Notes under the pieces: generated by a model
The model's input: only the letters and a program-made list of their open reading frames with translations
The model's database searches: none
What the model was told of the DNA's origin: nothing
Shown: positions 31,094 through 58,207 of the stretch, one piece after another
Layout of the letters: every line of letters starts with the position of its first letter
Position numbering within the stretch: position 1 is the first letter of the stretch
Made by a program: the position numbers and the translations under genes
Source: Rebecca billardiae RCC1528
Lineage: Eukaryota; Protista; Haptophyta
Direction of reading: 5' to 3'
Length of the DNA: 64,000 bases
Assembly (NCBI GenBank): GCA_965240325.2
Contig: OZ251228.1
Span: 2,728,001 to 2,792,000, forward strand

Positions 31094-31378
31094 ATGATGA
31101 ATCATGATGGGCCGCAATCGGAATCTCAAAGCCGCGCAGGCTCATCATCCGCGCCCGCGGCCGCGGTCCCTATAGAGTGGCTAGACTCTAGAGTCGTAGA
31201 GACCTTGGACAGCTAGTGATGGTTAGTGGCAGCCGCAGTTCACTGAATCAGTGAATGAGTACGTACTGATTGTCTGAATCGAGCCGAGTATACTACGGAG
31301 TAGTAGTGCGGGACGCGGGTGATGTGTAACTGATGAGGCCTTATGCTAGCTATATAGAGTCGTAGTCGTCTGATCTTA

Positions 31379-32675
31379 TGGCCCGCGGTGCAGGGCGGAG
31401 CGCGCAGCGTGGAGCCCGCACCAGCGGGCCCGAACCACGTTTCAAAAAGATCTTTGATCATATCAAGAAAAAAGGGACGGGGGGCGGCGGAAAAAAAGGG
31501 ACGGGGGGCGATTTTTAGGGCTGGCGGAGACCGAGTTTCGAGTTTTTGAGATCGCATTGAGAGGTCTATCAGGCCCAAAAAAACCGCGCCCAGCTGATTC
31601 CCTTAAGTAAAGTGCGATCTGGACGTCAGCTGGACGTGACATTAGTGTAACGGTTCGTTACGAGCGAATCGTACTCGTCTTCCCGGATCGCGTGACGTCC
31701 GGACTGGGCCACATCCGGATCGTCGGAGGTGACGTGCCCCGCGGCACGATGGGCGATGGCGGATATGCGGGACGGCGCCTGCACGTGCCTCCGGACCCGC
31801 CTCCCGCTTGCTGCTCACGCAGTCAGCTGCGACCGTGGCGCATGATCGCAGAAGCAGTGCCGGCAGTACGGCCTGCATCAGCTAGTGCCGCGCCGTCGTG
31901 GCGCGCGCGGTACGGTTGCGCGTTTGCAGCGCTCGCCGCTCGGCGACGGCACGCGCGTGCGGCTCAGGTGTGTCAAATGCGGTCTCGTCGGCGCGCTTTC
32001 GCCTGCCACCTCGTGCACCCGTGCCGCCAGTTTCATCGTCTTCATGAGGACTGCTGCTGCTGTCGCCATCCGCTCTCCATCACCCCGAGTCGCCGGTCGC
32101 GCGGCGCGCGCGGTAGGCACTAGGCAGGGCGTACGGTCACTCACCCGTGCAACGGGTCAAGTGGCCAGAGTACGTCTGGTCGTTGGCTGGCACGGGCCGC
32201 AGCGCTAAAGCACCCTGCTGTCACACCCGACTCCTTCAGTACTCCGAGCTCCGCGGCACGACTCACTCGGCACGCTCGCGGACGGGTCGGATCCGAGCTG
32301 ATCAGCCAGAGTTGGACACAGTTTGGCAGCTACTAGTAGTAATTCCGATGCCGATGGCACGATCGCGGACGGGTCGGATCCGAGCTGATCAGCCAGTTGG
32401 ACATTTGGCAGCTAGTTGTCAGACGGACGTCCGATTTGACGACCGGTGCCGGGTGCGGTCTCAGGTCCGCTGCTGTGATTGTGTGAAGTGTGAATGAGTC
32501 TCGCGGTCGCGCAGGCAGGGCCGCAGGGCGACGGTCGGACTAATATAGCTTCAGTCATCTCAGAACCGACTTCAACTGGCGAACTGCCACTACGGCGGAG
32601 AGCCGCGATTGCACGGCCACCGCGGGCCCCCAACTGCGTTGATTCTATGCAGAAAAGGACCGCGGAACGCGGTCA
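31379..32675 (+). mobile_element. Non-autonomous Helitron2/Helentron-like element, copy 2 (beta-type interior)
   Basis: Same 5' end, subterminal CACCGCGGGCC and 3' hairpin as copy 1. The paralogous site near 43171 (TCTTATATAT...GCTATAG) appears empty. Confidence 0.7.
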
Positions 32676-32862
32676 TATATATATGCTATAGTCAGTCCGT
32701 ACTACGCCGTACGGTAGTGTCTGTGACTACCGGCTGGAATAATCGGGACCGCCCGGCGGCCGGGCCTCTTGACTAGGTTGAGTAGGTAGTAGGTAGGCGA
32801 GCGCTTCAGAAAGCCGTACATAGTTTCTAGTTTATTTGTTTTAACGTCCTGCGTAAGGCTCA

Positions 32863-32985
32863 CGGTGGCAGGTTGCCGCGCCATCCTTCATCGCACGCTC
32901 TCCGAAGAGAGACCTGGAAACTGGTTTTGAACCCATGACCTCAGACGCAAGAGCACGCCAGTACTCCCATCGGCCACAGACCGGC
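32863..32985 (-). ncRNA. tRNA-derived SINE-like element, copy 2
   Basis: Homologous to 11101-11225; continues to a GTTAAAACAAATAAAC tail. Confidence 0.55.
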
Positions 32986-34018
32986 GTTACTACTAGCGCC
33001 ATCACCGCCAACTGCGCCCCATCGGGTGATCGCCTGATCGTGACTCAGTCACAGTGATCGCGGCCGAATTGAGCCCGCCATTTTTGTGAGAGATATATTT
33101 GGCGGATGACCGGACAGGAAGTGGTTGCAGCGAGCGGCGCGCTCTGCGTGTGGCCAGGGCTGGCTTGGGTGTACAGCTCAACCGACTAGCGGTTGGCTCT
33201 GAACAGGTCCATAGTCCATACTCCATGGAGCCCCCGTGAGTGGCATGCATGCTGAAATTCGTATCTGGCGCACGGTTGCATTTGACGGCGGGCGGGTTGG
33301 TGTGCGCACTGGTGGGCCTCCAGCGTTCGCTGCGGGTACTGTAGTGGCGCTGAGTGTAGCCCATGCCTGCACGGCCAGAGCCGAACGACTGGCTGTGCAG
33401 CAGCTGTGCAAGAGAGGTGTGCAACTGCCTGGGCTGGACCGATCGGGCCGTATATGCTCCTGGTGTAGCGCTACGCGCGGGCTCGCCCAGGGCTGTCGAG
33501 CGCATGTCGCATAGTCACCCACCATGCCACGTTATAATATCTGGGCGGCCTTGAGCGGGCTTGCTGGCTACAGACATGCGCAGAAGCCACACGGCTGCTT
33601 CACGGCCCTCACGACCAGCCTTGTGCCGACTGTCCGCATGACCCAGAGGGGTGCTCAACGCGGGCTGCCCGGTTATGCGCGCCCGGCTAGGCGCGCATGC
33701 GATAGCACTGCATGCCCCCGCAGCGGCTCGAGCCCCGAGTCGAGCCCGTCGCGCGCTGCGCGCGCGCGCTTGCACGCGAGCGCCTGCGCTGCTTTTGTGG
33801 CGGTGCCGCGCGTGTGCATGCTGCTTCAAGGCGCGGAGGAGGCGAGGACGAGGAAGGCGCGCGGCGCAGCGAGGGACGCCGGGCGGCTCTGCGACGGCTC
33901 AAGCCCCGCGCCGCCTCCGAGGCCCGACCCGACTGCCGCAGGAGCGCACGGGGCGAGCGGCTCCGCCGCCGTGCACGGCGGCGTGCGGGCGAGTGCCACC
34001 TGCTGGCGAGCGGCGACC

Positions 34019-36379
34019 GGCAGCGCTAAATCCCGGGCTGAGATAAGCTCCGCGCGAGCTTATCTCAGCCCGGGCTGAGATAAGCGCTTATCTCAGCCCA
34101 GCGGCTCGCGACTCGGGCACTCGGCCACCGTGAACTCGGAGCGCACGTCGCGCGGTGCGGCCCGCCCGCTCCATGGCTGCACGCGCTGCTGTGTCTTCGG
34201 TGGCCACAGGGTGAAGTGCGCTGAGTCTAGTGGCGGGCGCCCAGCTCCACCCACCCCCTTCTCCCTGGCCCGCCCCGCCTGCCCTCGCCCGCATCGGATG
34301 CCTTCCTCGCGCATGCAACTCCACGGCGGCAACTCGGCTTGTGGACTTGCTGCCCGCTTGAGAAGCATGCAGCCAACACCATGGACGCACCATCGACGTT
34401 CGCCAGTTGACCATGTCCGCGCGTAGTCGCACGCGGGTGAACACGGCCCGTGCGCTACAGTCGGTTGTGTGCTGTTGCCATTGCACGTTGTTCAAAATGT
34501 GCTGAACGTTGCCACCGCGGCCGCCGCGCGCGGGCCTACCGGTGCCAGCGGCACAGGCATGGGCACCGGCGCAGCTCCATGGACGATCATGGCGCTGCGG
34601 CTAGTGGGCGCGCCGACGCCGGCACGCCCGCAGCTGTCGGCGCGCACGGCGAGCACGCCAAGCTCGCAGCGCGTGCCGCGGCTCGGGGGCTGGTGCGCAC
34701 GGACAGCAAGCTAAGGTTGCGGTGTGCGCCGCGGTCCGCACGCACGCAGCGGCCGCCGCATGCGCCACGCGCGCGGTGGCCGCCGCGCGCGCCGCGGTTG
34801 CCGCGCGCGCCGTGGCTGCCGCGCGCGCCGCGGCGGACCAGCGCGCCGCGGACGTCGCGCGCGCGACGACCGAAGGCTAGTCTGTGGCGGATAGCGAGCG
34901 CGCCGCCGCGGCCAGTGAGCGCGCAGCGGCCGGCGAGCACGCTCAGCCTCATCGCGCAACTGTCACGTGTTGGCGCCAGGCTTGATGGGCACCTGCGGCG
35001 TTAGACAAATGGGCATCTGTGGCCCGCACGGTGCGCGCTCGCCGGTTGCGGTGGTGCGCTCGCCAATACCTACGCATGCTGGCGCGGCCTGCTCACCGGT
35101 CGCGGTGGCGCAAGCCCCGGCTGCACCATCCATCCGCGCCGGTTGCGGCGCGCTCACTAGCCACAGCGGCACGCTCGCTATCCGCCACAGACTCGCCTTC
35201 GGTCGCCGTGCGCGGGGCGGTCGCGGCGCGTTGGTCGGCCTCGGCGCGCTCGCCGGCCGCGGCGCGCGCGGCAGCCGCGGCGCGCGCAGCAGCCACGGCG
35301 CGCTCGCCGGCCGGGCGCGACGGCCGAGTTACGCTGTCTGCCGCCGTGGCGCGCTTACCGGCCGCAGCGCGCGTGGCAGCCGCGGCGCAATCGCCAGCCG
35401 CGCGGCGCGCGGCAGCCGCGGCGCCCTCACCGGCTGGGCGCGCGCAGCAGCCGCGGCGCACTCGCCGGCCGCGGCGCGCTCGCCGGCCGGCCGGGCGCGC
35501 TCAGCAGCCGCGGCGCGCTCGCCGGCCGCGGCGCGCTCGCCGGCTGCGGCGCGCAAGACGGCTGCGGCGCGCGCGGCGGCCGTTGTGTGCACGCGGACCA
35601 CGGTGCGCGCGGCGACCTTGGCGTGCTCGCCAAGCGCGCCGAAAGCTGCGAGCGCGACGGCGCCGGTGAGCCCACCAGCTGCGGCGCCACGACCGTCGAC
35701 AGTGTATTACTCTGCCTAAGCGCCTGCCACACTTGAGACGCAGCGAGCCGCACACCACAGCTGTCAGCCGATGGTCCAAGCTCGGTCGTGAACCGGCAGC
35801 CGCCGCGCAGAGTAGTGCGCCGCGCGAAGGGACCGTTTCGATCTGACGGGATCGCGATGATTGGCTGATCCAGCGTCGAGCGTGACCGGCAAGTATGCCA
35901 AGCTGGGCAAGCACATGCCGCAACGCGCGAACAGTACAAGGGCAACTCGGTACAAGGGCAACGGCACACGGCAGACAGGTGCACGTGGGCCGTGGCCACA
36001 TGCGTGCGATTACACATGACACACATGTACAGTACACGACGTACAAGTACCCGCGACCGTCGATGGTGGAATCGATGGTGGAACAATGGCGTTGGCTGAG
36101 GCCGTTGCATGCGCGAGGAAGGCATCCGATGCAGGCGAGGGCAGGCGGGGCGGGCCAGGGAGAAGGGGGTGGGTGCAGCTGGGCCCGCCACTAGACTCAG
36201 CACACTTCACCCTGTGGCCACCGAAGACACAGCAGCGCGTGCAGCCATGGAGCGGGCGGGCCGCACCGCGCGACGTGCGCTCCGAGTCCACGGTGGCCGA
36301 GTGCCCGAGTGCCCGAGTCGCCAGCCGTTGGGTTGAGATAAAGCGCTTATCTCAGCCCAGGCTAATTTAAGCGTTTAAT
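34019..36379. mobile_element. Non-autonomous TIR element (TIRs of about 280-300 bp with palindromic GGGCTGAGATAAG/CTTATCTCAGCCC ends)
   Basis: 34019-34319 is inverted at 36104-36379. Absent from duplicate E (GGCGACCAACACC near 44757). Flanks GACC/GATC. Confidence 0.85.
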
Positions 36380-36424
36380 GATCAACACCTTTGGTTGGGT
36401 TGACGGCGACGAAGAACGAAGAAC

Positions 36425-37756
36425 TTGGCGGCGGCGGCGGTGGCACGCACGCCAACCAACCGGTGCGCTGCGCACAAGCTGGCCGGCATGGTCGACATCG
36501 TGAGCCCAAAGTGTGATCACACTGACTGCTCCAAGGTGCCTCACTTCGGCATGCCGGGCGACGCGCGCGCCAGCCGGTGCGCTGCGCACAAGCTGGCCGG
36601 CATGGTCGACGTGAGGCACCCCAAGTGTGATCACGCTGGCTGCACCACGCGGCCTTCATTCGGCATGGCGGGCGACGCGCGCGCCAGCCGGTGCGCTGCG
36701 CACAAGCTGGCCGGCATGGTCGACGTGATGCACGTCAAGTGTGATCACACTGACTGCTCCAAGGTGCCTTCATTCGGCATGCCAGGCGACGCGCGCGCCA
36801 GCCGGTGCGCTACGCACAAGCTGGCCGGCATGGTCGACGTGGTGAGCCGCAAGTGTGATCACGCGGGCTGCACCAAGGGCCCTTCGTTCGGCATGGCGGG
36901 TGACGCGCGCGCCAGCCGGTGCGCTGCGCACAAGCTGGCCGGCATGGTCGACGTGATGCACGTCAAGTGTGATCACGCGGGCTGCACCACACAGCCTGCG
37001 TTCGGCATGCCGGGCGACGCGCGCGCCAGCCGGTGCGCTCCGCACAAGCTGGCCGGCATGGTCGACGTGAGGAGCCCCAAGTGTGATCACACCGGCTGCA
37101 CCACGCGGCCTTCATTCGGCATGCCGGGCGACGCGCGTGCCAGCCGGTGCGCTACGCACAAGCTGGCTGGCATGGTCGACGTAGTGAACCGCAAGTGTGA
37201 TCACGCTGGCTGCACCACACAGCCTGCGTTCGGCATGCCGGGCGACGCGCGCGCCAGCCGGTGCGCTCCGCACAAGCTGGCCGGCATGGTCAACTTGAAG
37301 AAGCGCAAGTGTGATCACGCTGGCTGCACCACGCAGCCTGCGTTCGGCATGCCGGGCGACGCGCGCGCCAGCCGGTGCGCTGCGCACAAGCTGGCCGGCA
37401 TGGTCGACGTGAGGAGCCCCAAGTGTGATCACACGGGCTGCACCAAGCAGCCTAACTTCGGCATGCCGGGCGACGCGCGCGCCAGCCGGTGCGCTGCGCA
37501 CAAGCTGGCCGGCATGAAGCGCCTTGGGAGTGGTGCGCATAAGCGCGGGCTGGAGCAAGACATGACGAGCAACAAAGAATCGAGCGCCGCTAAGCGACAG
37601 CGGAAGCGCACCAGGAGCACAGTCACTGCTCCGGACGTCGTGGCAGCGCGGCAGCCACGGGTGCAGCAGCTGCCGTTTCTGGTCACAGCCAGCGTCGTAT
37701 CGACGCCGTCACGTGTACGACCTGTGGTGATGGCCAGGCGGGTGCGCATGTCCTGA
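36425..37756 (+). CDS. EsV-1-7-type tandem-repeat protein, locus D (9 repeats); upstream region interrupted by an insertion
   Basis: Dipeptides KV,TR,KV,KG,TQ,TR,TQ,TQ,KQ. Tail HKRGLEQDMTSNKESSAAKRQRKR. First Met at 36488. Confidence 0.85.
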   Translation: MAAAAVARTPTNRCAAHKLAGMVDIVSPKCDHTDCSKVPHFGMPGDARASRCAAHKLAGMVDVRHPKCDHAGCTTRPSFGMAGDARASRCAAHKLAGMVDVMHVKCDHTDCSKVPSFGMPGDARASRCATHKLAGMVDVVSRKCDHAGCTKGPSFGMAGDARASRCAAHKLAGMVDVMHVKCDHAGCTTQPAFGMPGDARASRCAPHKLAGMVDVRSPKCDHTGCTTRPSFGMPGDARASRCATHKLAGMVDVVNRKCDHAGCTTQPAFGMPGDARASRCAPHKLAGMVNLKKRKCDHAGCTTQPAFGMPGDARASRCAAHKLAGMVDVRSPKCDHTGCTKQPNFGMPGDARASRCAAHKLAGMKRLGSGAHKRGLEQDMTSNKESSAAKRQRKRTRSTVTAPDVVAARQPRVQQLPFLVTASVVSTPSRVRPVVMARRVRMS

Positions 37757-38411
37757 CAAGTGACAGTGACAGTAACAATGACAATGATGTGAGCGCACGA
37801 TGCTGCTGAGGCCGCTGAGCGGCTGAGTCGGCTGGCCGCACTTTCAGATGCTGTGACCTGACATGCTGCATGAGTAGTGACGAACTATACGTCTACTTTG
37901 GGAATTAATGCGCGGGGGGCCCGGCGGCAGGGATTGGCGGGGATCTCGGCACCACTCTGACAGGCCACTGCACCAGGCCCCGCGGCCGCGCGGATCACGA
38001 ACGATGCGGCATGCGCACCCTCGCCCCATTGGGAGAGGGGAGGTAGCAGGTAGTCCTGACGGTCTCAACCCGGTACAGGCTTGCCAGCTGAGTCCGCTTC
38101 GCGTGCCTAGTATGCCGGCTAGTGACGCTGTCTACCGTCGTAGTGAAAGTGATCCGGTCCCGGCGTCACTTTGAGCTACGCAGTCCGCTGTCGACTGGCA
38201 AGCAGGTCTGCAGGAGACTTAATTTTTAAAAATCCGCGCTACCATCGGCGACGGCTTCATGGGCGGTGACGGTTGGCGGGCGTCGATCTCGCCTGCCTGA
38301 GCTGTGTCAAGGGCCGTGCGTAACGCTCCGTTATCCGAAGCTGATGAGCTCCGACTGAGTGACGCCCGTCGTCGGCCGTAGTCTGGTTCCCTAGTTACTT
38401 CCCTTGGTCTG

Positions 38412-40883
38412 AGAGCAGCCCACAGCGGAATAAGGGGTTGGCCACTGCGGCGCGCCCTTCCCGCGGGAGGGTTGGCCACTGGCGCCGCAGTGGCCAACCC
38501 CCCCCCCGGTGGCCAACCCCCCTTCGCCGCCGACGGAGCGCTCCGGGGGCGGCGCGGGCGGTTCGGGTGGGCCCACCCGACCACAATGACCCGCGCCGGC
38601 CACCGCAACACCGCCTCGCGACCCACTTCGCGCCCCGCGGGCACCTCGCAGAAGCGCGCGGCCCCACTGTGCTGGCGGCGCGTGCCCAGCGCGCGCTGCC
38701 GAGCGAGTGTGCGCGGATGGCGCGGGTTCTCCGCGGCGCGGAATGTCGGGGATGATGCAGTCGGTCGTGTCGCTGTGCAGCGCCAGGTCGCCGGCAGGTT
38801 CGCGCGCTGTCACGACGCTGCCCACCACCGAGCGCGGATCCTGCGCTGGGACGGCCAGCTGGGTGCCTTGGCGAGTGCGGCGGATGGCGAGAGGGATACG
38901 GGCGCGCTCGACCGTCGCGAGCGTGGAGAGGAAGCATGTACCTGCGCGCAAGCCGCGCCAGCTTGAGCTACCGATCGTTCGCATGCCATGCACCTCGCAC
39001 GCGTCTTTTCTTCTTGCCCTTGCGAATGGCGCCGAGCCCTTGACAGGACTACTCGTTCGAGTAACTACTCAGGCATGGCATGACAACAGCCACGTGCGCA
39101 GGCGTTGCATACAGATGTACACAAGTTGATGCGCCCACACACAACCCGAAGACTCCGATTCATCGCTTCAAGGCGCTTACGGTCGGTTGGTTCATCTCCA
39201 TCGCATGCATGGCTCGTGCAGGCTGATTCGCACTCATCAACAGCCGTCTAAAGCTGCATCAAAACGCACGATCGGTGGCTCAAGGCGGCGCGGCTTGCGA
39301 CATAGATATGCTTCCTCGCTCATTCTCAGCTCGTGTCCCGAGATGATCGCATCGCGCGCCAGGCGGGCGCACACGGCTGAGGCCGGCGCGGACTGCTCAT
39401 TCTGAGGCGACGCTTGCATGCGCGCTGATCATAGGCGCGGCCAAGTCGACGAGGAGCAAGCCGCGGGGAGCAGAGAGCAGTATGACGAGCGCGCTTATGC
39501 CACGCAAGCAACGCGCCGCCTTCGCACGGCAACTCGACGGCCGCAGCGCCTCACGCCTCGCGCGCGCTTAACGTGCGTAATATCAGGACGATTGGAAACA
39601 AAAAGAATAAAACTGACGAAAAGTCGAAAATAAGTCGCCGATTTGTCAGGCGGTGTCACACACTCACACAGACATGCAGCTAGATGAGCAGAGCGGCAAG
39701 CGCGCACGCGGCCGCGCAGGGCACACGGGGACGACTACATCACCGTCGGACCACTCGCCAGGCCCAGCCGCTGAGACGGCCGCCTGATGACATCTAGCCC
39801 TGCACTCTCGCCCCTGACTAGGGGCGGAGTCCGGCGCAGCACGGGCCCATGCGAGCTGCCGCACGGCGCAGGTGGATCCCGCCGCAGCAGTTCGATCGCG
39901 GTGCCGGTGCTGGCGGAGCTCTGCCCACCAACGCCGACTTAATATTGTCGATGACGATCGAGCACTGCCGACGACAAATAAAGAGACCTGCGCCGTCGTA
40001 TACCTGTGTCGTTATACATCATAGAATCGGTCTGTTACCACACAGTTGGGCGGTCGCGGCAGCATACTCAGTACTGCTGCTACATGTGCCGCAGTCAGCA
40101 AGCCGTAGCTGCTAGTACTGGTGAGTGCTGGCAACGGTACCCCGAGCGCGACTCAGCAGGCACCCCTCATACCGTTCCAGACCGGCCTGCCCGCAGAGTC
40201 TGCGACACCTGAGCACCGACCGACGTCAACCGTGCGCACGGCAAGCTGAGCTCAGACTGAGTGCCCGGGTCGGCTTGTCGCCGTGTGCTCGTGTGGCCAG
40301 TAGCGCGTCAAGTGTGCCCAGCTGGACGAATACCAGGGTGAGCTTGCGCGCAGGTACATGCTTCCTCTCCACGCTCGCGACGGTCGAGCGCGCCCGTATC
40401 CCTCTCGCCATCCGCCGCACTCGCCAAGGCACCCAGCTGGCCGTCCCAGCGCAGGATCCGCGCTCGGTGGTGGGCAGCGTCGTGACAGCGCGCGAACCTG
40501 CCGGCGACCTGGCGCTGCACAGCGACACGACCGACTGCATCATCCCCGACATTCCGCGCCGCGGAGAACCCGCGCCATCCGCGCACACTCGCTCGGCAGC
40601 GCGCGCTGGGCACGCGCCGCCAGCACAGTGGGGCCGCGCGCTTCTGCGAGGTGCCCGCGGGGCGCGAAGTGGGTCGCGAGGCGGTGTTGCGGTGGCCGGC
40701 GCGGGTCATTGTGGTCGGGTGGGCCCACCCGAACCGCCCGCGCCGCCCCCGGAGCGCTCCGTCGGCGGCGAAGGGGGGTTGGCCACCGGGGGGGGGGTTG
40801 GCCACTGCGGCGCCAGTGGCCAACCCTCCCGCGGGAAGGGCGCGCCGCAGTGGCCAACCCCTTATTCCGCTGTGGGCTGCTCT
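38412..40883. mobile_element. Non-autonomous element with 542-bp TIRs; TSD CTG (or TCTGA if the termini are GAG...CTC)
   Basis: 38412-38953 is inverted at 40342-40883. Empty site CCTTGGTCTGATGATGAG at 46671. Confidence 0.92.
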
Positions 40884-41990
40884 CTGATGATGAGTCGGAT
40901 CCCGGGTAGATCCCGTGCACTTGATTACTGAGGCTTTTCGTCAGCAGGAGAAAAGCGCCGCGCTTCTTTCTTCTGCGCTTGCACCGCGAACGATTCTGGT
41001 CGGGCGGCACTCCGCCGACCGGGACGGCCGCCGACCAGCCCGCGGCCGCCTGCTGCAGCTCGTGGAACACGCAGTCGCGCGCTCGCGCGTTGAGGGCGGA
41101 CCTGCGCGTATGCGCCCGCCGGGCTTGCCGCTTCATCCGCTGGCACCGCAGTGCAGGTCGAGCCGTCCGCCGCCCACCGAGCCGGCGCCACGCCTCGCGC
41201 TCGTGCTCGAGCTGAGGCGGCGCGTGTCGCCGGAGCCGGCGGGTTCGCGCGCGTGCGCGTGGTGGGCAGCCTCGCGCGTGCGCCCGCCGCGCGCCCCGCG
41301 TCGCTCGCTTGGCGCCGCACGCGAGCCGCTCGTCGCGCGACCGAACGAGACGTCAATCAAGGGCGACCCTTGGAATGGCGTGGGCTCTCCGCCTGTCGTC
41401 CTTCGCGGGCCGTCGTCGACGCGAGGCCGCGCGAGGTTGCTCCGATGCTCGTAGTCCAATGCAAGATGATACCCGCGTGCCGCTATCAGCGCGCCCTTTC
41501 GCTCGTGAATTGTCTAGCGAGAATATGACGGTTCGTGTGAATGTGAGTTGTGAACTCGCGACACGACGAATCACGAATGCGCCGATGCGATTCGCGCGAA
41601 TGTGAGTACGCAAAGCGCCGAACGACGAGCGGTTTTCGACCGAACGACGAGCGGTTTTTGTCCTATCGGGCGCCTAGGCGGGTACGCGAATTGCGCATAT
41701 GTGACCCGGTGGGCGACAAACAGACGCAGCCGGGCGTCAAAAAAAGGGGTGCGACGGGCTGGTCCCCAGCGTGAAGTCGTGCCTTTGTTCTCGTGGGTTT
41801 CCAGAAAACAGCGGGGGCCTAGCGGCCTTTTCCCGGTGGGGCTGGTCGAACACAGCGCGTCTAGGACGCGACGGAAAGCTTGCCAGGGCCGGCAGACCCG
41901 ACGACGATGGGACGAGTTGGCCGTTCAGCGCTGACTAACGGTATCATCCGGGCTGCCGCGTCTTCGCGCGTCGCGCGTGCGATTTAGCCG

Positions 41991-42767
41991 TTAGCCAGGC
42001 GTCTGCAAGGCCCACCGAGGCGCCAGCGAGGCGCGCGTCGATGCAGTCGTCGCTGCGCACGGCCGCTCGGGCACGGCGGCACGGCAACGGCACGCACCGA
42101 TCACGCCGTGCGTGCGCGCGTCGGCCATCGACGCGTGGTAGTCGTGCAGCAACTGCAGCTCCGTGGGGTTTTCCGCACGTCGTGCGCGCTGCTGCTGCCG
42201 GACGCCCAGATGGCGCGCGACCGCGTCGGTCGCGGCGGCCTCGCGCGCCGCGCGCGGGGCGGCTCGACGCGCGGCGTGACCCTCGCGGCGCTCCGCGTTG
42301 CGCGCCTCGTCCACGCCGTTCAGCGTGCTCGCCAGCCGCGCGCGCAGCTGCGCGAGGCACGCGTCGAGCGCTGCCGGCGTCTCGCAGTTTGGGTGCGAGG
42401 CCGCGGGCGCGCGCGCGCCGGGGCGCGTGGCCTCGTGCGGGTGCACGGCGAGGCGCGCCAGGTCCACAAACGGCTCGTCGCGCAGTTCCAGCGCGCGCAG
42501 CCCGGCGACGCGCGCGTCCCAGCGCGCGACGTGTTTGGACAGCGCGTTCGACATGCGCGCGCCGCCCGCGTCGCCCTCGCCGCGGTACCGGCGGATGAGA
42601 ATGGCCAGGGCTGCACGCACGTTGGCGAATTGCGCGCACGCCGCCGCGCTCCGCCTCCGCATCTGCACGACACACGCCGCGTAGACCACGAACGAATCCA
42701 GCTCGTGCACGACATCGTCAGCCGACGTGGCGATGTCGGGCCGACGGCGGCCAAAGTCACGACTCAC
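41991..42767 (-). CDS. Hypothetical protein (258 aa)
   Basis: ATG-started ORF with protein-like helical composition; no recognised motif. Confidence 0.35.
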   Translation of the reverse strand: MSRDFGRRRPDIATSADDVVHELDSFVVYAACVVQMRRRSAAACAQFANVRAALAILIRRYRGEGDAGGARMSNALSKHVARWDARVAGLRALELRDEPFVDLARLAVHPHEATRPGARAPAASHPNCETPAALDACLAQLRARLASTLNGVDEARNAERREGHAARRAAPRAAREAAATDAVARHLGVRQQQRARRAENPTELQLLHDYHASMADARTHGVIGACRCRAAVPERPCAATTASTRASLAPRWALQTPG

Positions 42768-43360
42768 GATGTGCCCGTCCCGACCAGGGACCCGGCGTCG
42801 CGGCAGGCGCTTTCCGTACCGTTACCGTATTGTATAGGCGGTATGAACTGGGTAAGGGGGTACCGCTAAGATCGCCGCCAGATTTGTGGGAATCGCAACG
42901 ACATCTCTATGCGGCGCGCGCAAAAATTAACCACATGCGCTTCGATTCCCGAGGCGGGCCCTAATTGGCGCAAAAATTAACCAAGTGCGTTCTCGATTCC
43001 CGAGGCGTGCCTAATCATAAAACGTTTGAGGCCCCATTGTTCGTATTCCTACTCCGGTATTACTTTCCCCAGCAGTACGTCACACCCAATTAAAGGGGGT
43101 CGGAGCTGGGTCTCCCAGGGCTTTCTCACGAATTAAAATTGTTTAAAGCTGTGTTCACCAGAATATAGAGTCTTATATATATATATATGCTATAGTAGTC
43201 CGTACTACGCCGTACGGTAGCTTAGTGTCTGTGACTACCGACTGGAATAATCGGGACCGCCCGGCGGCCGGGCCTCTTGACTAGGTAGTAGGTAGGCGAG
43301 CGCTTCAGAAAGCCGTACAGTTTATTTGTTTTAACGTCCTGGACTCCTGCGTAAGGCTCA

Positions 43361-43497
43361 CGGTGGCAGGTTCAGGTTGCCGCACCATCCTTCATCGCAC
43401 GCTCTCCGAAGAGAGACCTGGAAACTGGTTTATTTGATGAACCCATGACCTCAGACGCAAGAGCACGCTGAGTACTCCCACTCGGCCACAGACCGGC
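43361..43497 (-). ncRNA. tRNA-derived SINE-like element, copy 3 (B box disrupted)
   Basis: Homologous to copies 1 and 2, with small insertions. Confidence 0.5.
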
Positions 43498-44267
43498 GTT
43501 ACTACTAGCGCCATCACCGCCAACTGCGCCCCATCGGGTGATCGCCTTCGGATCGTGACTCAGTCACAGACACAGTGATCGCGGCCGAATTGAGCCCGCC
43601 ATTTTTGTGAGAGATATGAGGTTTCAGAGCAGCAAAAATAAATTGTAATTAATTAATCCGTTTCTGGCGGCCTCTATTAATGGATGACGAATTCCAATAG
43701 TATGGGGGTACAGGGTCCCCAACAATTGTTCGGGCCACACTGATTTTTGCTGACTACGGCTGCTGACGATGAGATGGGCCAGAGGCTCTCAGTAGCGCCA
43801 TAGACCTTACTCCTCGGCGGATGACCGGACAGGAAGTGGTTGCAGCGAGCGGCGCGCTCTGCGCGTGGCCAGGGCTGGCTTGGGTGTACAGCTCAACCGA
43901 CTAGCGGTTGGCTCTGAACAGGTCCATGGAGCCCCCGTGAGTGGCATGCATGCTGAAATTCGTATCTGGCGCACGGTTGCATTTGACGGCGGGCGGGTTG
44001 GTGTGCGCACTGGTGGGCCTCCAGCGTTCGCTGCGGGTAATCTCGCCTGCCTGAGCTGTGTGCGTCTCTTATTCTTAGTAAACTGTAGTGGCGCCGAGTG
44101 TAGCCCATGCCTGCACGGCCAGAGCCGAACGACTGGCTGTGCAGCAGCTGTGCAAGAGAGGTGTGCAACTGCCTGGGCTGGACCGATCGGGCCGTATATG
44201 CTCCTGGTGTAGCGCTACGCGCGGGCTCGCCCAGGGCTGTCGAGCGCATGTCGCATAGTCACCGACC

Positions 44268-46031
44268 ATGCCACGTTATAATATCTGGGCGGCCTTGAGC
44301 GGGCTTGCTGGCTACAGACATGCGCAGAAGCCACACGGCTGCTTCACGGCCCTCACGACCAGCCTTGTGCCGACTGTCCGCATGACCCAGAGGGGTGCTC
44401 AACGCGGGCTGCCCGGTTATGCGCGCCCGGCTAGGCGCGCATGCGATAGCACTGCATGCCCCCGCAGCGGCTCGAGCCCCGAGTCGAGCCCGTCGCGCGC
44501 TGCGCGCGCGCGCTTGCACGCGAGCGCCTGCGCTGCTTTTGTGGCGGTGCCGCGCGGGTGCATGCTGCTTCAAGGCGCGGAGGAGGCGAGGACGAGGAAG
44601 GCGCGCGGCGCAGCGAGGGACGCCGGGCGGCTCTGCGACGGCTCAAGCCCCGCGCCGCCTCCGAGGCCCGACCCGACTGCCGCAGGAGCGCACGGGGCGA
44701 GCGGCTCCGCCGCCGTGCACGGCGGCGTGCGGGCGAGTGCCACCTGCTTGGCGAGCGGCGACCAACACCCTTGGTTGGGCCGACGGCGACGAAGAAGGAA
44801 GAACTTGGCGGCGGCGGCGGTGGCACGCACGCCAACCAACCGGTGCGCTGCGCACAAGCTGGCCGGCATGGTCGACATCGTGAGCCCAAAGTGTGATCAC
44901 ACTGACTGCTCCAAGGTGCCTCACTTCGGCATGCCGGGCGACGCGCACGCCAGCCGGTGCGCTGCGCACAAGCTGGCCGGCATGGTCGACGTGAAGAACC
45001 CCAAGTGTGATCACGCTGGCTGCACCACGCGGCCTTCATTCGGCATGCCGGGCGACGCGCGCGCCAGCCGGTGCGCTACGCACAAGCTGGTCGGCATGGT
45101 CGACGTGATGAGCCGCAAGTGCGATCACACCGGCTGCACCGCGCGGCCTTCCTTCGGCGTGCCGGGCGACGCGCGCGCCAGCCGGTGCGCTACGCACAAG
45201 CTGGCCGGCATGGTTGACGTGAGGCACCCCAAGTGTGATCACGCTGGCTGCACCACGCGGCCTTCATTCGGCATGCCGGGCGACGCGCGCGCCAGCCGGT
45301 GCGCTACGCACAAGCTGGCCGGCATGGTCGACGTGAGGCACCCCAAGTGTGATCACGCTGGCTGCACCACGCGGCCTTCATTCGGCATGGCGGGCGACGC
45401 GCGCGCCAGCCGGTGCGCTGCGCACACGCTGGCCGGCATGGTCGACATCGTGAGCCCAAAGTGTGATCACACTGACTGCTCCAAGGTGCCTCACTTCGGC
45501 ATGCCGGGCGACGCGCACGCCAGCCGGTGCGCTGCGCACAAGCTGGCCGGCATGGTCGACGTGAAGAACCCCAAGTGTGATCACGCTGGCTGCACCACGC
45601 GGCCTTCATTCGGCATGCCGGGCGACGCGCGCGCCAGCCGGTGCGCTACGCACAAGCTGGTCGGCATGGTCGACGTGATGAGCCCCAAGTGTGATCACGC
45701 CGGCTGCACCACGCAGCCTTCGTTCGGCATGCCGGGCGACGCGCGCGCCAGCCGGTGCGCTGCGCACAAGCTGGCCGGCATGAAGCGCCTTGGGAGTGGT
45801 GCGCATAAGCGCGGGCTGGAGCAAGACATGACGAGCAACAAAGAATCGAGCGCCGCTAAGCGACAGCGGAAGCGCACCAGGAGCACAGTCACTGCTCCGG
45901 ACGTCGTGGCAGCGCGGCAGCCACGGGTGCAGCAGCTGCCGTTTCTGGTCACAGCCAGCGTCGTATCGACGCCGTCACGTGTACGACCTGTGGTGATGGC
46001 CAGGCGGGTGCGCATGGCCTGGCAACAGTGA
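44268..46031 (+). CDS. EsV-1-7-type tandem-repeat protein, locus E (8 repeats); true start uncertain (array Met at 44868)
   Basis: Dipeptides KV,TR,AR,TR,TR,KV,TR,TQ. Tail the same as D except the last residues. Confidence 0.85.
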   Translation: MPRYNIWAALSGLAGYRHAQKPHGCFTALTTSLVPTVRMTQRGAQRGLPGYARPARRACDSTACPRSGSSPESSPSRAARARLHASACAAFVAVPRGCMLLQGAEEARTRKARGAARDAGRLCDGSSPAPPPRPDPTAAGAHGASGSAAVHGGVRASATCLASGDQHPWLGRRRRRRKNLAAAAVARTPTNRCAAHKLAGMVDIVSPKCDHTDCSKVPHFGMPGDAHASRCAAHKLAGMVDVKNPKCDHAGCTTRPSFGMPGDARASRCATHKLVGMVDVMSRKCDHTGCTARPSFGVPGDARASRCATHKLAGMVDVRHPKCDHAGCTTRPSFGMPGDARASRCATHKLAGMVDVRHPKCDHAGCTTRPSFGMAGDARASRCAAHTLAGMVDIVSPKCDHTDCSKVPHFGMPGDAHASRCAAHKLAGMVDVKNPKCDHAGCTTRPSFGMPGDARASRCATHKLVGMVDVMSPKCDHAGCTTQPSFGMPGDARASRCAAHKLAGMKRLGSGAHKRGLEQDMTSNKESSAAKRQRKRTRSTVTAPDVVAARQPRVQQLPFLVTASVVSTPSRVRPVVMARRVRMAWQQ

Positions 46032-46836
46032 CACAGACACGGTGACAATGACAATGTGAGCGCGCACGATGCTGCTGAGGCCGCTGAGCGGCTGAGTCAG
46101 GCTGGCCGCACTTTCAGATGCTGTGAGTGTGACCTGACATGCTGCATGAGTAGTGACGAACTATACGTCTACTTTGGGAATTAATGCGCGGGGGGCCCGG
46201 CGGCAGGGATTGGCGGGGATCTCGGCACCACTCCACCAGGCCCCGCGCGGATCACGAACTGATGCGGCAGCATGCGCACCCTCCGTCCCTCGCCCCATTG
46301 GGAGAGGGGAGGTAGCAGGTAGTCCTGACGGTCTCAACCCGGTACAGGCTTGCCAGCTGAGTCCGCTTCGCGTGCCTAGTATGCCGGCTAGTGACGCTGT
46401 CTACCGTCGTAGTGAAAGTGATCCGGTCCCGGCGTCACTTTGAGCTACGCAGTCCGCTGTCGACTGGCAAGCAGGTCTGCAGGAGACTTAATTTTTAAAA
46501 ATCCGCGCTACCATCGGCGACGGCTTCATGGGCGGTGACGGTTGGCGGGCGTCGATCTCGCCTGCCTGAGCTGTGTCAAGGGCCGTGCGCAACGCTCCGT
46601 TATCCGAAGCTGATGAGCTCCGACTGAGTGACGCCCGTCGTCGGCCATAGTCTGGTTCCCTAGTTACTTCCCTTGGTCTGATGATGAGTCGGATCCCGGG
46701 TAGATCCCGTGCACTTGATTACTGTAGAGGCTTTTCGTCAGCAGGAGAAAAGCGCCGCGCTTCTTTCTTCTGCGCTTGCACCGCGAACGATTCTGGTCGG
46801 GCGCCCTCCGCCGACCGGGACGGCCTCGCTTTCCTG

Positions 46837-49800
46837 ATGTTGGGGCGCGCGCTCGCGGCGTCGCTCGCCCTGCTCGGGCTCGCGCCTTGGGCGGCGCGGT
46901 GTGCCGAGGTGAGCTTCTGCCTCGATGCATGCGGCAGCCGCTTCTTCGAGCGTGAAGCCGTCGGCGACGGCACGTGCGACGACGGCGAGGGCGGCAAGTG
47001 CACGTTTGGGACGGACTGCGCCGACTGCGGCGCGCGCACGTACGACACGGACGAGTTTTTGCCCTCGCTCGGCGTGGAGTACGAGATCGTGTCTCGGAAG
47101 GCCCTCGGCGAGAAGGAGGTGTGCGACGACACGTGCGACTTCCCCAAGGACGGCTTCTGCGACGACGGGCGGCCGGGCGTGCCGAACGCGTTTGCGGTCG
47201 CCGCGTGCGACTACGGCACGGACTGCTCGGACTGCGGCACGGGGACGGTGACGGAGTACCGCGAGGAGAAGCACACGGTGGCCTCGTGCGCGCCGACCAC
47301 GCCGCGCGCCAAGAAGAAGTGGGCCTTCCTCCTCTACCAGCAGGCGGACAACAACCTGGAGGGCTTTGCGCTCTCGGACGTGGGCGAGGAGATCACCAAG
47401 CTGGCGGACACGTCCGACGTGCACATCGTCGTGCTGATGGACCGCGCGAGCAAGAAGGTGCGCGGCTCGACGGACCGGCCGCTGCCCGTGTCCGTGCGCG
47501 ACTGCAAGGGCGGCACGCCCAAGACCACCTTCACGGAGAGCTGGCTGCTCGAGTGGGTGCCCGCGGCGGCCGCGGACGAGCGCGCGCCGGCCGTGGAGGG
47601 CCACTACAAGCTGCTGGCGGCGAAGGAGCTGGACATGGACGACATGCGCACGGTCTCGGGGTTCTTCACGTGGGCCCTCGAGATGTACCCCTCCGACCAC
47701 CTCCTCGTCGACATGTGGGACCACGGCGCCGGCCTCGCCGGGCACGGCGGCGACGGCTCGCACTCGCACGCGATGCTGGGCGTGGCCGACCTCTTCGTGG
47801 CGCTGCAGGCGGCGACGCGCGCGAGCGGGCGCGCGATCGACATCATCGGGTTCGACGCGTGCCTGATGTCGGAGTTCTCCGTGCTGACGATGCTGCGCCC
47901 CCTCGCGCGCTCCTTCCTCGTCTCCGAGGACCTCGAGCCCGGCCACGGCTGGCAGTACGCCGCGATCGACGTGCGCGCGGACGTGCCTGGGCTGGGCCGC
48001 TCGATCATCGACGGCTTCATGGCGCACTCGGACGAGAGCCCGCGCACGCTGGCGCACGTGGACGGCAGGCAGTTCGACGCGTTCTCCGACGCGTTCGGCG
48101 CGCTCATCGACTGCCTCACCGCCGCCGTCGAGTCGAACGACGCCGCGGTCGTGCACCTGCTCGCGACCGCGCGCGCGCAGTCGCGCGCGCTCGAGGGCGT
48201 GTACGAGGGGCCGGACGAGCACGACTGGTTCTTCGTCGACCTGGGCGACTGGCTGGACGAGCTGGTGATGGGCACGGACGACGACGTGTGCCGCGCGGTG
48301 CACCTCAAGGCCGCCGCCGCGCTCCGCGCGTACAGCCTCACCTTCCTCGCCGCGCGCGTCTCCGACCCGGTGCGGTACACAGGCATGAGCCTGTACTACC
48401 CCAAGGTGGCGCAGTACGGCGCCAACAAGGACGCGCGCGACTCGTTCCGGGGGCAGCTGCTGCGCATCGCGGACGAGGTGGACAGCCTGACGGGCGCGCG
48501 GAACGGCGCGACGCTGCGCAAGTGGACCGCCTTCCTCGCCGCGCTCTACGGCACCACGCACGCGCGCACCTCCTCCTACCTCTCGGCCGGCACCACGTCG
48601 ATCTGCGGCGCCGTCGACGTGCCGGCGGACGAGAAGTTCGAGGTGGGGCCCGGCATGGTGGCGGCGCTGAGCGGCGCGGTGGGCGGGCTGGTGTCGAAGC
48701 TCGAGCTGCGCGCGCCCGTGCCCAGCGCGGCGGTCGCGTGCTTCGGCGCGTACGGCGAGCTGCGCGCGCGCGAGCACGACGCGCAGCCCTTTGCGGGCGC
48801 GCTCGGCGGCTTTGTCGTGCCGGGCGCGCTCAGCGACGCGCGCTCGGCCGCGCAGGCCAAGCTCACGTGGCTCGGGCGGCTGTGGCACGTGGTGGGCGGC
48901 GGGCTGAGCGAGACGCCGCACATCTCGGAGGAGTCGGTGGTGGGCTCGAAGGTCGTGCTCAACCTGCCGTGCACCTACCGCGCGCGGCACAACGCGCGGC
49001 GGCAGAGCGCGCGCATGGTCGTCACGATCGAGCACGGCGCGGCCGGCCGCTCGCGCGGCGCGCACGCGCACGCGCCGCGCGCCTCGCGGCTGCGGCAGCA
49101 CATGCACGCCAACTTCTCGCTGTACGACGCGCAGAACGCGGCGATCGCGCCCGCGCTCGGCGCGCTCGTCCACTTCAAGCGCGCCCTCGCCGCCTCGCGC
49201 GACACCAGCTGGCCGATGCGCACCACCCTCGTCGACTCGGCGTCCGCGTTCGACTTTGCGCGCGTGCGCTCGTGGCACGTGGAGTATGACTCGGTCGGGC
49301 ACGCGGCGCCGTCGGCGCACGGCGCGCCGCGCGTGCTGCTGCTGCAGCTGGCGATCGCGGACGTGCTGAGCAAGCAGGCCGGCGCCGCGGTCGGCGTCAA
49401 CCTGCACACCGGCGCGTGGGCGCCGCTGGCCAACTGCACGAGCCTCGCGTGCGCGCCTGAGAAGCTGCTGGCAGCCGCGCCGCCCGCGCCGCCGCTCCCG
49501 CCCGCGCCGCCGCCCGCGCCGCCGCCGTCGCCGCCGGGCGAGCGGCACGAGCCGCCGCCGAGCCCGCCGAGCCCGCCGAGCCCCGCGCCCGCGCCCTCGG
49601 CCTGCGCGGCCGACGACCTCTTCGAGGTGCGCGTCGAGGTGGACGTGGGCTCCAACTTTGCGGACGAGACCTCGTGGATGCTCTTCCTGCTGGACGCGCG
49701 GCAGCAGCCCGCGTGGGCGACCGGGCTGTACAGGGGCGAGCCCGCGGTGAGCATCGGGCTGGGCGGCTCGTTCCGACCCGCGCTCAACTTCGAGGCGCCG

Positions 49801-50169
49801 CTCTCGCACATGTTCTGCCTCTCGCGCGGCAACTACCTCTTCGTCATCCGCGACTCGTTCCAGGACGGGTGCGCGCGCAGGCCAGCGCGCGCACAGAGCA
49901 GCCAGCCGGCGCGGCGCGCCGAGTGGGGCCGCGCGTGCGCGCGCGCGCGCACGCGCGGGTTGCCGGGCCGGTGCGCGCGGCGCGCTCTGAGCCGCGGCGC
50001 CGCCGCCCGCCGCGCCCACGCCCCGGCCCCTTCGCGCGCGCGCAGCCTCGACCCGCCGGGCAAGTACGAGCTGTGGGTGCAAGGCATGCTGATCGCGAGC
50101 GGCGACCGGTTTGGCGCGCGCGCAGAGCACCGCTTCCACCTGGGCGAGCGGGGGTACCTGCACCCGCCC

Positions 50170-50223
<54 letters not shown>

Positions 50224-50787
50224 AGCCCGCCCGCCGTGGCCGCGCCGCCGCGCGTCGTCGACTACGTCGGCCACTGCCCCGGCCCGCGCACGCAGCTCAC
50301 CGTGCAGTTTGTGTACGACCCCTGGCCCGACGAGACGGCGTGGTCGCTGCTCGGGCCGGGCGGGCTCGAGCTGGCGGAGCGGTACGGCGGCTCGGGCAGC
50401 CACGTGTCGGTGTGCGTGGCGGACACGGTGGGCGACCATTACGTCTTCATCGTCGTGGACGGGCTCGGCGACGGCCTCGATGCGCCCGCGGGGTACAAGG
50501 TGCGCCGCGCGCGCGCGCCGCCCCGCCCCGCCGGGCGGAGAGAGGCGGGCGGGCGGGTGGGTGCGCCCCTGGCCCCGCCGCCCTCTCCCTGTGTGGCCTC
50601 ACGCCCCGCGCCCCTCGCGCCGCCCCCGCGCCTGCCGCCGCTGCCGCAGGTGTTCGCGGACGGGCTGCTGGTCGTGGAGGGAGGCGCCGGCCGCTTCGAG
50701 CAGCGGATCCACTACTTCACCACAGAGGGCGCGGTGCCGGTGCAGCCGCCGCCGCCGGCCCCGCCGAGCGGGCTGAGCGCGCCGCCG

Positions 50788-50831
<44 letters not shown>

Positions 50832-51612
50832 CGTGACGGTCGCGCCGCCGCCGCCGCCCGCCAGCCTCGGCTGCGCACCCCCGCACGCCGAGTTCGTCCT
50901 CAGGCTGCTGACCGACCAGTACCCCGAGGAGCTGAGCTGGGCGCTGCGCAGGCGCGACCACCACGCCACGCACGCGCCCGTGCTCGAGGGCGACGCCATC
51001 GACTGGGCGAGCGGGCTGTTTGCGCAGAGCGCGACGGTGGTGCAGCGCGCGTGCCTCGGACCCGGCCCGTACGCGTTCGAGCTGCGCGACGCGTTCGCGG
51101 ACGGGCTCCAGGACGGCGTGGGCGCGGGGTACACGCTCACCATCGGCAGCGCGAGCGCCACGGACACGCGCTCGAGCGGCGGCGCGGGCTTTGCGGAGGC
51201 CGAGCTCACGACGTTCAGCGTCGGCGCGGACGGCAGCGTGCGCGATGTGCGCACGGCCGCCGACCCGCCCGACGCGTCGCGCGGCGCGCGCTCGCAGTTT
51301 GGAGGCCACGCCATCGAGGCGCTGAGCCAGCGGCGCGCGCACGGCCACGCGCACCGCGCGGCCGCGCGGCTCAGGCGCGCGGTGCGCGCCAACACCTCGG
51401 CGCGGCCGGAGGCGCGCGCCGCGCCCGTGGCCCGGCAGCTGCGGCTGCTCGGCGGCGCGGCGTGCACCCTCGTGGCCGCGGCGGCCGCGGTGCTGCTCGG
51501 CGCGCGACGGCGTCGGGCGGCGATGGACCTCGCTGAGCGGCCCGCGCCCGCCGGGGCCTCGCCGGGCGAGTGCCATGCCGCCACTGTGCGCACACAACAC
51601 GCGCTCCTCTGA
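46837..51612 (+). CDS. Type-I membrane/secreted clostripain-like (peptidase C11) protein with Cys-rich N-terminal repeats, Pro-rich linkers and three repeated domains (likely introns 49869-50045, 50500-50649)
   Basis: Signal peptide MLGRALAASLALLGLAPWAA. WAFLLYQQADNNLE, WDHGAG (His), IIGFDACLMS (Cys), SEDLEPGHGWQY. Repeated D.(W/Y)P.E.(S/A)W.L...C...Y.F...D...DG domains. C-terminal hydrophobic helix followed by RRRR. Confidence 0.88.
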
Positions 51613-51676
51613 CCGGGCGCGCTCCGCCGCGTGCGCGCTGCTGCTGATCGATGCTCGTCTCGTCTCGCCGCCATAA

Positions 51677-54600: not shown

Positions 54601-55206
54601 CCGAGGTGTGTCACCCCGTGCACGCGCGGCGCGCGCAAGCACCGGTGCTGCATGGCTGCTCGCACCGTGCTCCCTGGCTCGGTCAGTCAGCTCAGGCCGC
54701 GTGTCGCCTGGTGTGCACGTAGAGTCGCGCTCATGCGTCGCTCACGCCTCGCGCCCGCCTGTCGGCCGTCGCGCAGGCGCGCAGGTCGAACCCTACTGAC
54801 CTGCAGATCATCTACTCCTGCGCTGCTGGCGTCGCGGCGACGACGGTCAGCGGCAGGCCCGAACGAACGGTCGAATGCGCGGTCCCACGGTGCAAGAGTC
54901 GCGCTCGTGCGTCGATCACGCCGAGTCGCATCCGCCTGTCGGCCGTCGCGCACGCGCAGGGGGTCAGGTAAGGGCCGTCTGTGATGAGGGCAGCTCGGCC
55001 GACGACCGACATCCACACTCGGCGCACGCCAGCCGCCGACGCGCCCGCGCCCGGCCGGCCGGCCGGGCCGGCGGCGGCGCGGCGCTGGGCGGCGCGCCGC
55101 TGGATGGAGTCTAGTTACGTACGGGACGACTGCGACGGAGGGTGCACCGCCACCGCGGGCCCCGAACTACGTTCGTTCTACGGAAAAGGACCGCGGAACG
55201 CGGTCA
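51677..55206 (+). mobile_element. Non-autonomous Helitron2/Helentron-like element, copy 3 (alpha), containing a nested 1.94-kb insertion
   Basis: Same termini; largely colinear with copy 1 after removing 52010-53965. Confidence 0.7.
52010..53950. mobile_element. 1941-bp TIR element, 12-bp TIR TAGCCTGGTCCA, 7-bp TSD TTGGTAT
   Basis: TSD at 52003-52009 and 53951-53957. Empty site GGTTGGTATCTAG in copy 1 near 1229. Confidence 0.88.
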
Positions 55207-55563
55207 TATACTGTATACTCTGTAGATATGAGTCAATGGCGATCGTCATCGCCGGCGCGCGGGCCAGCGCGCCTTAGCATGATGTATATATATATCATCA
55301 TAGCAGGTTGTATAGCTAGTCTCAGCGCGCTTATATATTATTATACCGCCAGTATCTCTTAATATATTATATATATACTGACAGTCTGATTAATCGGATC
55401 GCGCGCCGTCTACTTCAGCGCAGATCGACGCGCAGTCCGAGCAGCCGCGCCCGAACCGATGATCAGCAAGGCACGATGACTTATTGCCACGACGCGGCCG
55501 CGGCCGCGGCCGCGGTCGGCCGCCGGCGAGCAACGTGAACGTGCCAGTATTCAGTATTGAGTA

Positions 55564-57161: not shown

Positions 57162-57212
57162 TAACAATAAGCTGCTTCGCGACAGTCATAACTAGTCTGC
57201 TGCTCTGTCAGT

Positions 57213-58134: not shown

Positions 58135-58207
58135 CTGCTCATCTCCACACGAGCGCGATCGCGCGAGCACTGTGTCTTTTGGATGACAACGAGGAGGTGA
58201 AAGACCG

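Follow-up and report, generated by a model that had tools for sequence, protein, structure and literature searches.

What becomes of an array of tandem repeats once the gene that carries it has been duplicated? This question is raised by two neighbouring genes, D and E, in a stretch of 64,000 nucleotides from the haptophyte Rebecca billardiae RCC1528 (NCBI GenBank assembly GCA_965240325.2, contig OZ251228.1, positions 2,728,001 to 2,792,000 of the forward strand), hereafter called the window. The host genome is GC-rich and eukaryotic. Six arrays, A to F, each composed of a 114-nt unit, lie within the 64-kb window; they contain 55 units, 52 of them distinct, and are compared here as one assembled haplotype. 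Judged by their scores against PF19114 (422.5 bits over 10 stretches for D and 369 bits over 9 stretches for E, the curated Pfam cut-off being 25 bits), D and E are members of the EsV-1-7 domain family. As they share scaffold and tail and carry different strings of units, they offer a natural controlled experiment in which the turnover of an array can be dated. We consider it probable that D and E are recent twins, that their arrays have been rewritten by passive recombination and that their products likely bind DNA.

EsV-1-7 genes are arranged in tandem clusters in brown algae, as they are here, and are thought to be viral in origin (10.1101/2024.02.19.579948). The domain defines the largest orthogroup of these algae, which includes a developmental regulator, IMM; it has been described as a possible novel class of zinc finger whose molecular function is open (10.64898/2026.04.27.720984; 10.1101/2024.02.19.579948).

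Divergence of flanks and arrays

Outside the arrays, D and E differ by 21 substitutions in 2415 aligned nt (0.87%), by 28 indels of 1–43 nt and by a 200-nt segment found in E only. The first units, D1 and E1, are 1 nt apart (Arg/His at unit position 26) and the tail coding sequences differ at 1 nt in 236; the C-termini nonetheless end differently, with RMS-stop in D and RMAWQQ-stop in E. The aligned sequences show that D and E arose from a 3.65-kb segment which was duplicated locally and not long ago. An earlier note on this DNA had described a near-identical cassette of 3.6 kb, with near-identical first repeat and C-terminal tail. This description is accurate for the two ends and for substitutions; the quoted length, however, includes the array and passes over the indels and the E-only segment. 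Moreover, the interval given there (36425–46031) misses the start of cassette D at 32675, and D is split by two insertions. Indels outnumber substitutions in these flanks (for example within 32684–33096 and 37753–38412), many are 3–14 nt long and often they are small duplications. Such a spectrum appears unusual and resembles transposon footprints.

Within the arrays, D reads KV,TR,KV,KG,TQ,TR,TQ,TQ,KQ and E reads KV,TR,AR,TR,TR,KV,TR,TQ, exactly as the earlier note had read them, and the linker residues differ as it had also stated. The collinear units 2–8 show 81 differences in 798 nt (10.2%), compared with 11.7% for random unit pairs and with about 7 differences expected at the flank rate (Poisson P about 1e-56). 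The flank divergence is thus too small to explain the differences between the arrays. Only D1/E1 and D2/E5 are near-identical, with 1 nt between the members of each pair, and the latter match is out of order. No E unit comes closer than 7–11 nt to any of D3–D9 (P 8e-5 per unit). In terms of sequence, the arrays were randomised while the flanks drifted by less than 1%.

The other arrays of the window extend this comparison. In the older pair B/F, the upstream divergence is 5.4% substitutions and the collinearity of the arrays (9 versus 14 units) is wholly lost. An upstream gene of unknown function, oriented head to head, is common to loci B (8658–10957) and F (57470–60259). Locus A (1–728) opens with KV and TR units which are 5–6 nt from the first two units of D and E, and this suggests an array start common to A, D and E despite the unrelated leader of A. 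Contigs from two runs of related organisms hold 5–7% of words; their similarity to E (3.8 kb) is 85–99% and none spans an array.

Signatures of recombination

For 74 of the 81 differences between D and E, both alleles are also present in paralogues A, B, C or F. Private variants number six in D and one in E, close to the number expected of new mutation at the divergence of the flanks. Because the collinear units approach the divergence of random pairs and because so many differences reuse paralogue alleles, the comparison shows recombination, not mutation, to be the origin of the array differences. Point mutation was rejected as their cause on the excess over expectation given above.

Two events can be traced in E. 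The array contains an exact internal duplication of 257 nt, in which E1, E2 and the start of E3 equal E6, E7 and the start of E8, and which carries the one private variant of E in both copies. Over its 3′ part, E8 differs from D8 by at most 2 nt. Furthermore, E2–E6 are collinear with units F8–F12, with 5 mismatches in 476 nt (1.05%) when a patch in F10 is set aside. Since this block is near-identical while the leaders of E and F are unrelated and their tails barely alignable, it is best read as an ectopic exchange between non-allelic loci 14 kb apart; the exchange is about as young as the duplication of D and E. The E/F match did not stand out when whole three-unit blocks were put to a shuffle test, because F10 is patched; in the comparison below the level of the unit it did. 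Unit F10 itself (59390–59518) is a 129-nt hybrid of two unit starts with an out-of-register, in-frame patch of 15 nt, a recombination junction preserved in place.

At a finer scale, the 52 distinct units offer 630 informative site pairs, of which 291 violate the four-gamete test, and the minimum number of recombination events (Rm) within the 114-nt unit is 13; recurrent mutation may inflate these figures. Under a copying model, 5–6 switches and 6–8 mismatches are enough to paint E out of itself and the other arrays; D requires 14–16 switches. Painting D from E alone was rejected, as it would demand 48–68 mismatches. Units D3–D9 form an internally mosaic block which holds the six private variants of D. 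Reused alleles, the Rm value, duplication inside an array and exchange between loci together bear out the earlier proposal that recombination rewrites these arrays as in PRDM9 or in transcription activator-like (TAL) effectors.

Mechanism of array turnover

Three to four events, by our reconstruction of their number and direction, would suffice to convert one array into the other. Because so few suffice, passive turnover explains the arrays, and the mechanism is probably the ordinary one of minisatellites within a multigene family, with no dedicated diversifier. Units of 114 nt which are about 88% alike and share invariant stretches would allow homologous exchange out of register. After the duplication, most units would have been replaced, with the frame kept, as whole units were lost or doubled and as tracts were converted with locus F. 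As purifying selection holds the Cys3His scaffold, the output would consist of new combinations of existing residues at positions 4, 5, 16 and 18. The one haplotype agrees both with arrays that kept different parts of an ancestor of about 12 units and with a single array overwritten from another locus.

The repeat unit and its variable positions

The unit of 38 amino acids follows the ligand pattern Cys-x4-Cys-x16-Cys-x2-His (Cys3His). The three cysteines and the histidine are invariant in all 52 distinct units of the window and in alignment A1; Pro17, Phe19 and the closing Gly-Met are likewise invariant across the window. Zinc binding is predicted from the ligand spacing and from a confident model (predicted local distance difference test, pLDDT, 92). 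Neither stops nor frameshifts occur in the 55 units, and the ratio of amino-acid-changing to silent polymorphism (pN/pS) of the scaffold is 0.35–0.43. Purifying selection keeps the Cys3His scaffold.

Variation is concentrated at a few positions. In the window, positions 4, 16, 5, 6 and 18 are the most variable. An independent set of 141 near-identical unit pairs from 36 unrelated database homologues is headed by positions 16, 18, 5 and 4, where the residues Q, R, T, K, H, S and N are common. The two rankings agree (Spearman 0.53 without the zinc ligands, P 0.001; overlap of top positions P 1e-4). The di-residue 15–16, which the earlier note used as descriptor of the units, therefore captures one hot spot, position 16; position 15 mostly alternates between K and T, while 4, 5 and 18 are missed. 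At six variable sites the pairwise pN/pS is 1.5, and allele counting gives 0.86 locally.

The array is preceded by a leader. The open frame of gene D reaches back to 36404. For E, a frame of 587 residues from 44268, with an N-terminal extension of 200 residues, was considered and judged unlikely: the extension has no domain match and its frame is broken in D, the leaders of the six loci are unrelated and cut the repeat at different points, and contigs of related organisms diverge within it.

Homologues and likely function

The closest relatives of D and E are EsV-1-7 proteins of giant-virus type that carry a nuclease of the PD-(D/E)xK kind and vary at the same positions. In 97 of the 120 best homologues, the array is followed by a C-terminal domain with RPD and ExDExxH motifs. 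The model of this domain (pLDDT 90) matches the R2 retrotransposon endonuclease, McrC and Holliday-junction resolvases (Hjc), with a best E-value of 5e-4. A search of the viral tail sequence against the PDB gave nothing significant, so that its placement rests on the fold search and on weak Hjc, DUF559 and DUF2726 matches. One nuclease-bearing homologue, P0002, lies in a contig of giant-virus type with capping-enzyme, ligase and RNA-polymerase genes; the closest homologues, P0010 and P0025, reach 57–58% identity. Most simply, an array placed before a restriction-like nuclease would be its targeting part.

D and E differ from these proteins in lacking the nuclease: their tails of 80 residues, basic and of low complexity, contain no RPD..ExDExxH motif and have neither a Pfam match nor a detected homologue. 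The terminal PVVMARRV motif of these tails is also found in locus C. A homologue search with the related tail of locus C yielded only a summed, weak match to Calx-beta-like repeats, which was judged spurious. The proteins are basic, with 68 (D) and 59 (E) lysines and arginines against 32 and 30 acidic residues. DNA binding is favoured because of the nuclease-fold fusion in most homologues, the variable sites common to the family and the basic charge, and we lean towards nuclear, sequence-specific DNA binding for the products of D and E. They may act as repressors or regulators in which the targeting array of the viral-type layout stands without the nuclease and is followed by a tail with a stretch resembling a nuclear localization signal (NLS); if so, D and E would now recognise different sequences. 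That each unit reads DNA by a true code of its own is a more doubtful proposal.

Two database contigs contain related arrays. At L002:763–1716 lies a four-unit EsV-1-7 gene without nuclease, with 73% DNA identity to the window arrays and a basic NLS-like stretch after the array; its source is probably a related eukaryote. A second array-like stretch is present at L001:9235–9715, in the contig of the nuclease-bearing P0010, where the gene has no recorded Pfam hit.

Weighing the explanations

Several observations weigh against the reading of passively rewritten twins with DNA-binding products. The flanks are unstable too, with 28 indels and two insertions over the same interval, so the event rate of the arrays need not be exceptional. 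Gene D may be silent, silenced by insertion 1, which sits 105 nt upstream of its likely start codon and cuts it off from its ancestral upstream DNA. The four-unit array model, confident and without long helices, resembles no solved structure by sequence, Foldseek or VIA-align (best Z 2.8). In a literature search that left most subscription journals outside, we found no paper showing DNA binding by EsV-1-7 proteins, nor any that deals with the shuffling of units, with the positions that vary or with the link to a nuclease. Lastly, amino-acid-changing alleles at the variable sites number 30 against 21.4 expected (P 0.046 relative to the all-codon rate, for sites picked post hoc), so positive selection at these sites is only marginally supported in the window.

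Could the arrays have diverged in another way? Differential loss would start from an ancestor of about 12 units, E1–E5 followed by D3–D9; D lost units 2–4, E swapped its rear units for a copy of its own front units, and no exchange between loci followed the duplication. The E/F block would then be older than the duplication or have been transferred out of E. The scheme accounts well for the matches of D1 with E1 and D2 with E5 within 1 nt, for the likeness of E8 to D8 in its 3′ part and for the mosaic structure and private variants of D3–D9, as expected of an old block. We hold it to be possible, if rather unlikely, as the E/F block looks as young as the duplication itself; and since it still needs three to four recombination events inside the arrays, it is a variant of passive rewriting and not an alternative to it. 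A dedicated system of targeted breaks or programmed conversion, working at a high rate and producing variation within the culture as in antigenic variation, would agree with the loss of collinearity below 1% flank divergence, with the many paralogues as donor pool and with the exchange of tracts between loci. It is nevertheless highly improbable, given that a handful of events is enough, that structural events per kb were more frequent in the flanks than in the arrays, that no recombinase, nuclease or silent donor cassette was seen in the window and that PRDM9 arrays show comparable turnover with no machinery of this kind (PMC3890296). The claim that the arrays are rewritten much faster than the surrounding DNA consequently holds for their sequence content; for the rate of events (three to four exchanges against 28 indels and two insertions of transposon type) it is unsupported, as is active diversification in the sense of a dedicated or unusually fast mechanism. 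An assembly artefact, in which a single locus appears twice in tandem through its two haplotypes or arrays were mis-joined from reads of different loci, is very unlikely. Substitutions at 0.87%, many indels and insertions present in one copy only do resemble heterozygosity, and the exact 257-nt repeat in E could stem from a mis-join. Yet the window has no N gap, the cassettes are separated by a unique spacer of 2.15 kb with clean junctions, and the left end of D joins a different element through short microhomology. The arrays measure just 1 kb, their units are 5–15% apart and in frame, and the six private variants of D have no possible source in any other locus of the window. The arrays would remain hypervariable even if D and E proved to be alleles.

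A further explanation leaves the history of the arrays untouched and concerns their meaning. Turnover may be neutral and the variable residues without code, either because the units bind protein or RNA or because the genes are decaying viral relics kept similar by conversion. The near-neutral behaviour of the variable sites by allele counting, the weak, RING-like structural echoes of the array model and the disrupted upstream region of D are in line with this explanation. We consider it unlikely, because all 55 units are open with Cys3His kept, variation falls on positions 4, 5, 16 and 18 in 36 unrelated proteins as well, and most homologues carry a nuclease-fold partner in need of a targeting domain. 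The most far-reaching form of the DNA-binding reading is itself tentative. It takes EsV-1-7 arrays for an undescribed modular class of DNA-reading repeats with a per-unit code at positions 4, 5, 16 and 18. On this view the alga took the arrays over from giant-virus nucleases and maintains them as a repertoire that recombines, perhaps for defence against transposons or viruses; a handful of unit exchanges would give a new gene copy other targets while its flanks are still less than 1% diverged. D and E would then show such retargeting in progress. Should the units read DNA singly, a new programmable binding scaffold would stand beside C2H2 fingers and TAL effectors, and a single-celled alga would display evolution of the KRAB zinc-finger or PRDM9 type; should they not read DNA, the shuffling would be ordinary minisatellite behaviour of modest interest. 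In either case, the locus contributes a gene pair that is dated, a block exchange that is traced and a correction of the variable positions.

Comparison with known repeat systems

The repeat of TAL effectors is a helical unit of 33–35 residues with a di-residue at 12–13. That of D and E is non-helical and predicted to bind zinc, varies at four or more positions grouped in two clusters and gives no TAL match in Pfam; the genes belong to a eukaryotic host and encode neither secretion signal nor activation domain. The likeness to Xanthomonas TAL effectors lies elsewhere, namely in a multigene family of near-identical repeats with conserved ends, which diversifies as bases are substituted, as genes recombine with one another and as repeats are deleted (PMC5512977). 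PRDM9 shares with D and E near-identical tandem units, variation at few fixed residues, and changes by duplication, deletion and conversion which are attributed to minisatellite structure (PMC3890296). Its unit is a C2H2 finger of 28 residues and it is a single gene, whereas the 38-residue Cys3His units of D and E belong to a multigene family with exchange between loci and their DNA binding is putative. D and E also lack KRAB, SSXRD and PR/SET domains, PF19114 being the only Pfam family above cut-off. D and E thus appear to evolve like PRDM9 and TAL effectors without belonging to either family.

Vertebrate KRAB zinc-finger clusters are also fast-duplicating zinc-array genes in transposon-rich DNA, and a short effector motif may be a further shared trait; D and E differ in their finger, in the absence of a KRAB box and in a far stronger homogenisation of units. 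The same Cys3His repeat is found in the described EsV-1-7 proteins, such as Ectocarpus IMMEDIATE UPRIGHT and EsV-1 virus gene 7 (PF19114), in comparison with which the units of the window stand out by their DNA identity and by the blocks exchanged between loci.

Layout of the cassettes and neighbouring elements

The features of the two cassettes are collected in Table 1. The position of E is probably that of the parent and D the daughter, because the 3′ flank of E enters the clostripain-family gene while that of D stops just before the likely start of this gene, and because the left end of D joins a broken element. This end begins at a (TA)n run where the arm of a terminal-repeat element (31376–32677) breaks off.

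Table 1. Features of cassettes D and E and of the exchange partner in locus F (window coordinates)
Feature	Position	Strand	Remarks
Cassette D	32675–41029		lengthened by two inverted-repeat insertions
5′ flank of D	32675–34018	+	homologous to 43179–44763; 7 substitutions in 1298 aligned nt, 14 indels
Insertion 1, D only	34019–36382		2.36 kb; inverted arms of ~250 bp
Leader of D	36383–36487	+	includes partial repeat unit; 4 substitutions relative to E, all adjoining insertion 1; probably 5′ untranslated region
Gene D	36488–37756	+	422 aa; putative start Met precedes unit 1
Array D	36491–37516	+	nine 114-nt EsV-1-7 units; Cys8, Cys13, Cys30, His33 invariant
C-terminal tail of D	37517–37756	+	basic NLS-like stretch KRQRKR; terminal PVVMARRV
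3′ flank of D, first part	37757–38412	+	homologous to 46032–46681
Insertion 2, D only	38413–40882		2470 bp (2.47 kb); perfect terminal inverted repeats of 541 bp
3′ flank of D, last part	40883–41029	+	homologous to 46677–46825
Spacer	41030–43178		2.15 kb; unique; no N bases
Cassette E	43179–46825		3.65 kb, including the 0.91-kb array
5′ flank and leader of E	43179–44867	+	
Gene E	44868–46031	+	387 aa; putative start Met precedes unit 1
Array E	44871–45782	+	eight EsV-1-7 units
Tail and 3′ flank of E	45783–46825	+	runs into 5′ end of clostripain-family (PF03415) gene
Units F8–F12	59162–59746	+	non-allelic exchange partner of E2–E6

The two insertions in D differ in preservation. The arms of insertion 1 are 98% identical in their core; its ends are eroded and a target duplication is not clear. 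Insertion 2 is very recent and is bordered by a 5-bp target-site duplication, TCTGA (38408–38412 and 40883–40887). Segments of E without counterpart in D are the one of 200 nt (43618–43815) and one of 43 nt (about 44039–44081). The spacer contains an open reading frame of 258 codons on the minus strand (41991–42767), for which there is no Pfam match and for which Atlas gave only weak helical-bundle look-alikes.

The clostripain-family gene (PF03415) which follows E occupies 46681–51612 and encodes a signal-peptide-like start, Cys-rich N-terminal repeats and polyproline stalks; the closest database matches of the protein reach 26–30% identity. One family of terminal-inverted-repeat elements has ends at 893, 31376, 51676, 57162 and 62254. 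Its member at 51676–57164 is seemingly a full copy, and truncated copies lie beside loci A, D and F. A fold-back element at 3904–4955 has arms of 430 bp which are 100% complementary.

A dispersed 125-bp repeat (32863–32987, 43373–43499 and 11101–11227) is 91–96% identical between copies. Scans for tRNAs with ARAGORN and against Rfam gave no match. Its minus strand shows motifs that resemble the A and B boxes of RNA polymerase III, and it is possibly a short interspersed nuclear element of tRNA type. Finally, a composite tandem repeat of 43, 121 and 166 bp at 14248–16860 and a 40-bp minisatellite at 18533–18971 (11 copies, 96%) can serve as non-EsV controls for repeat turnover.

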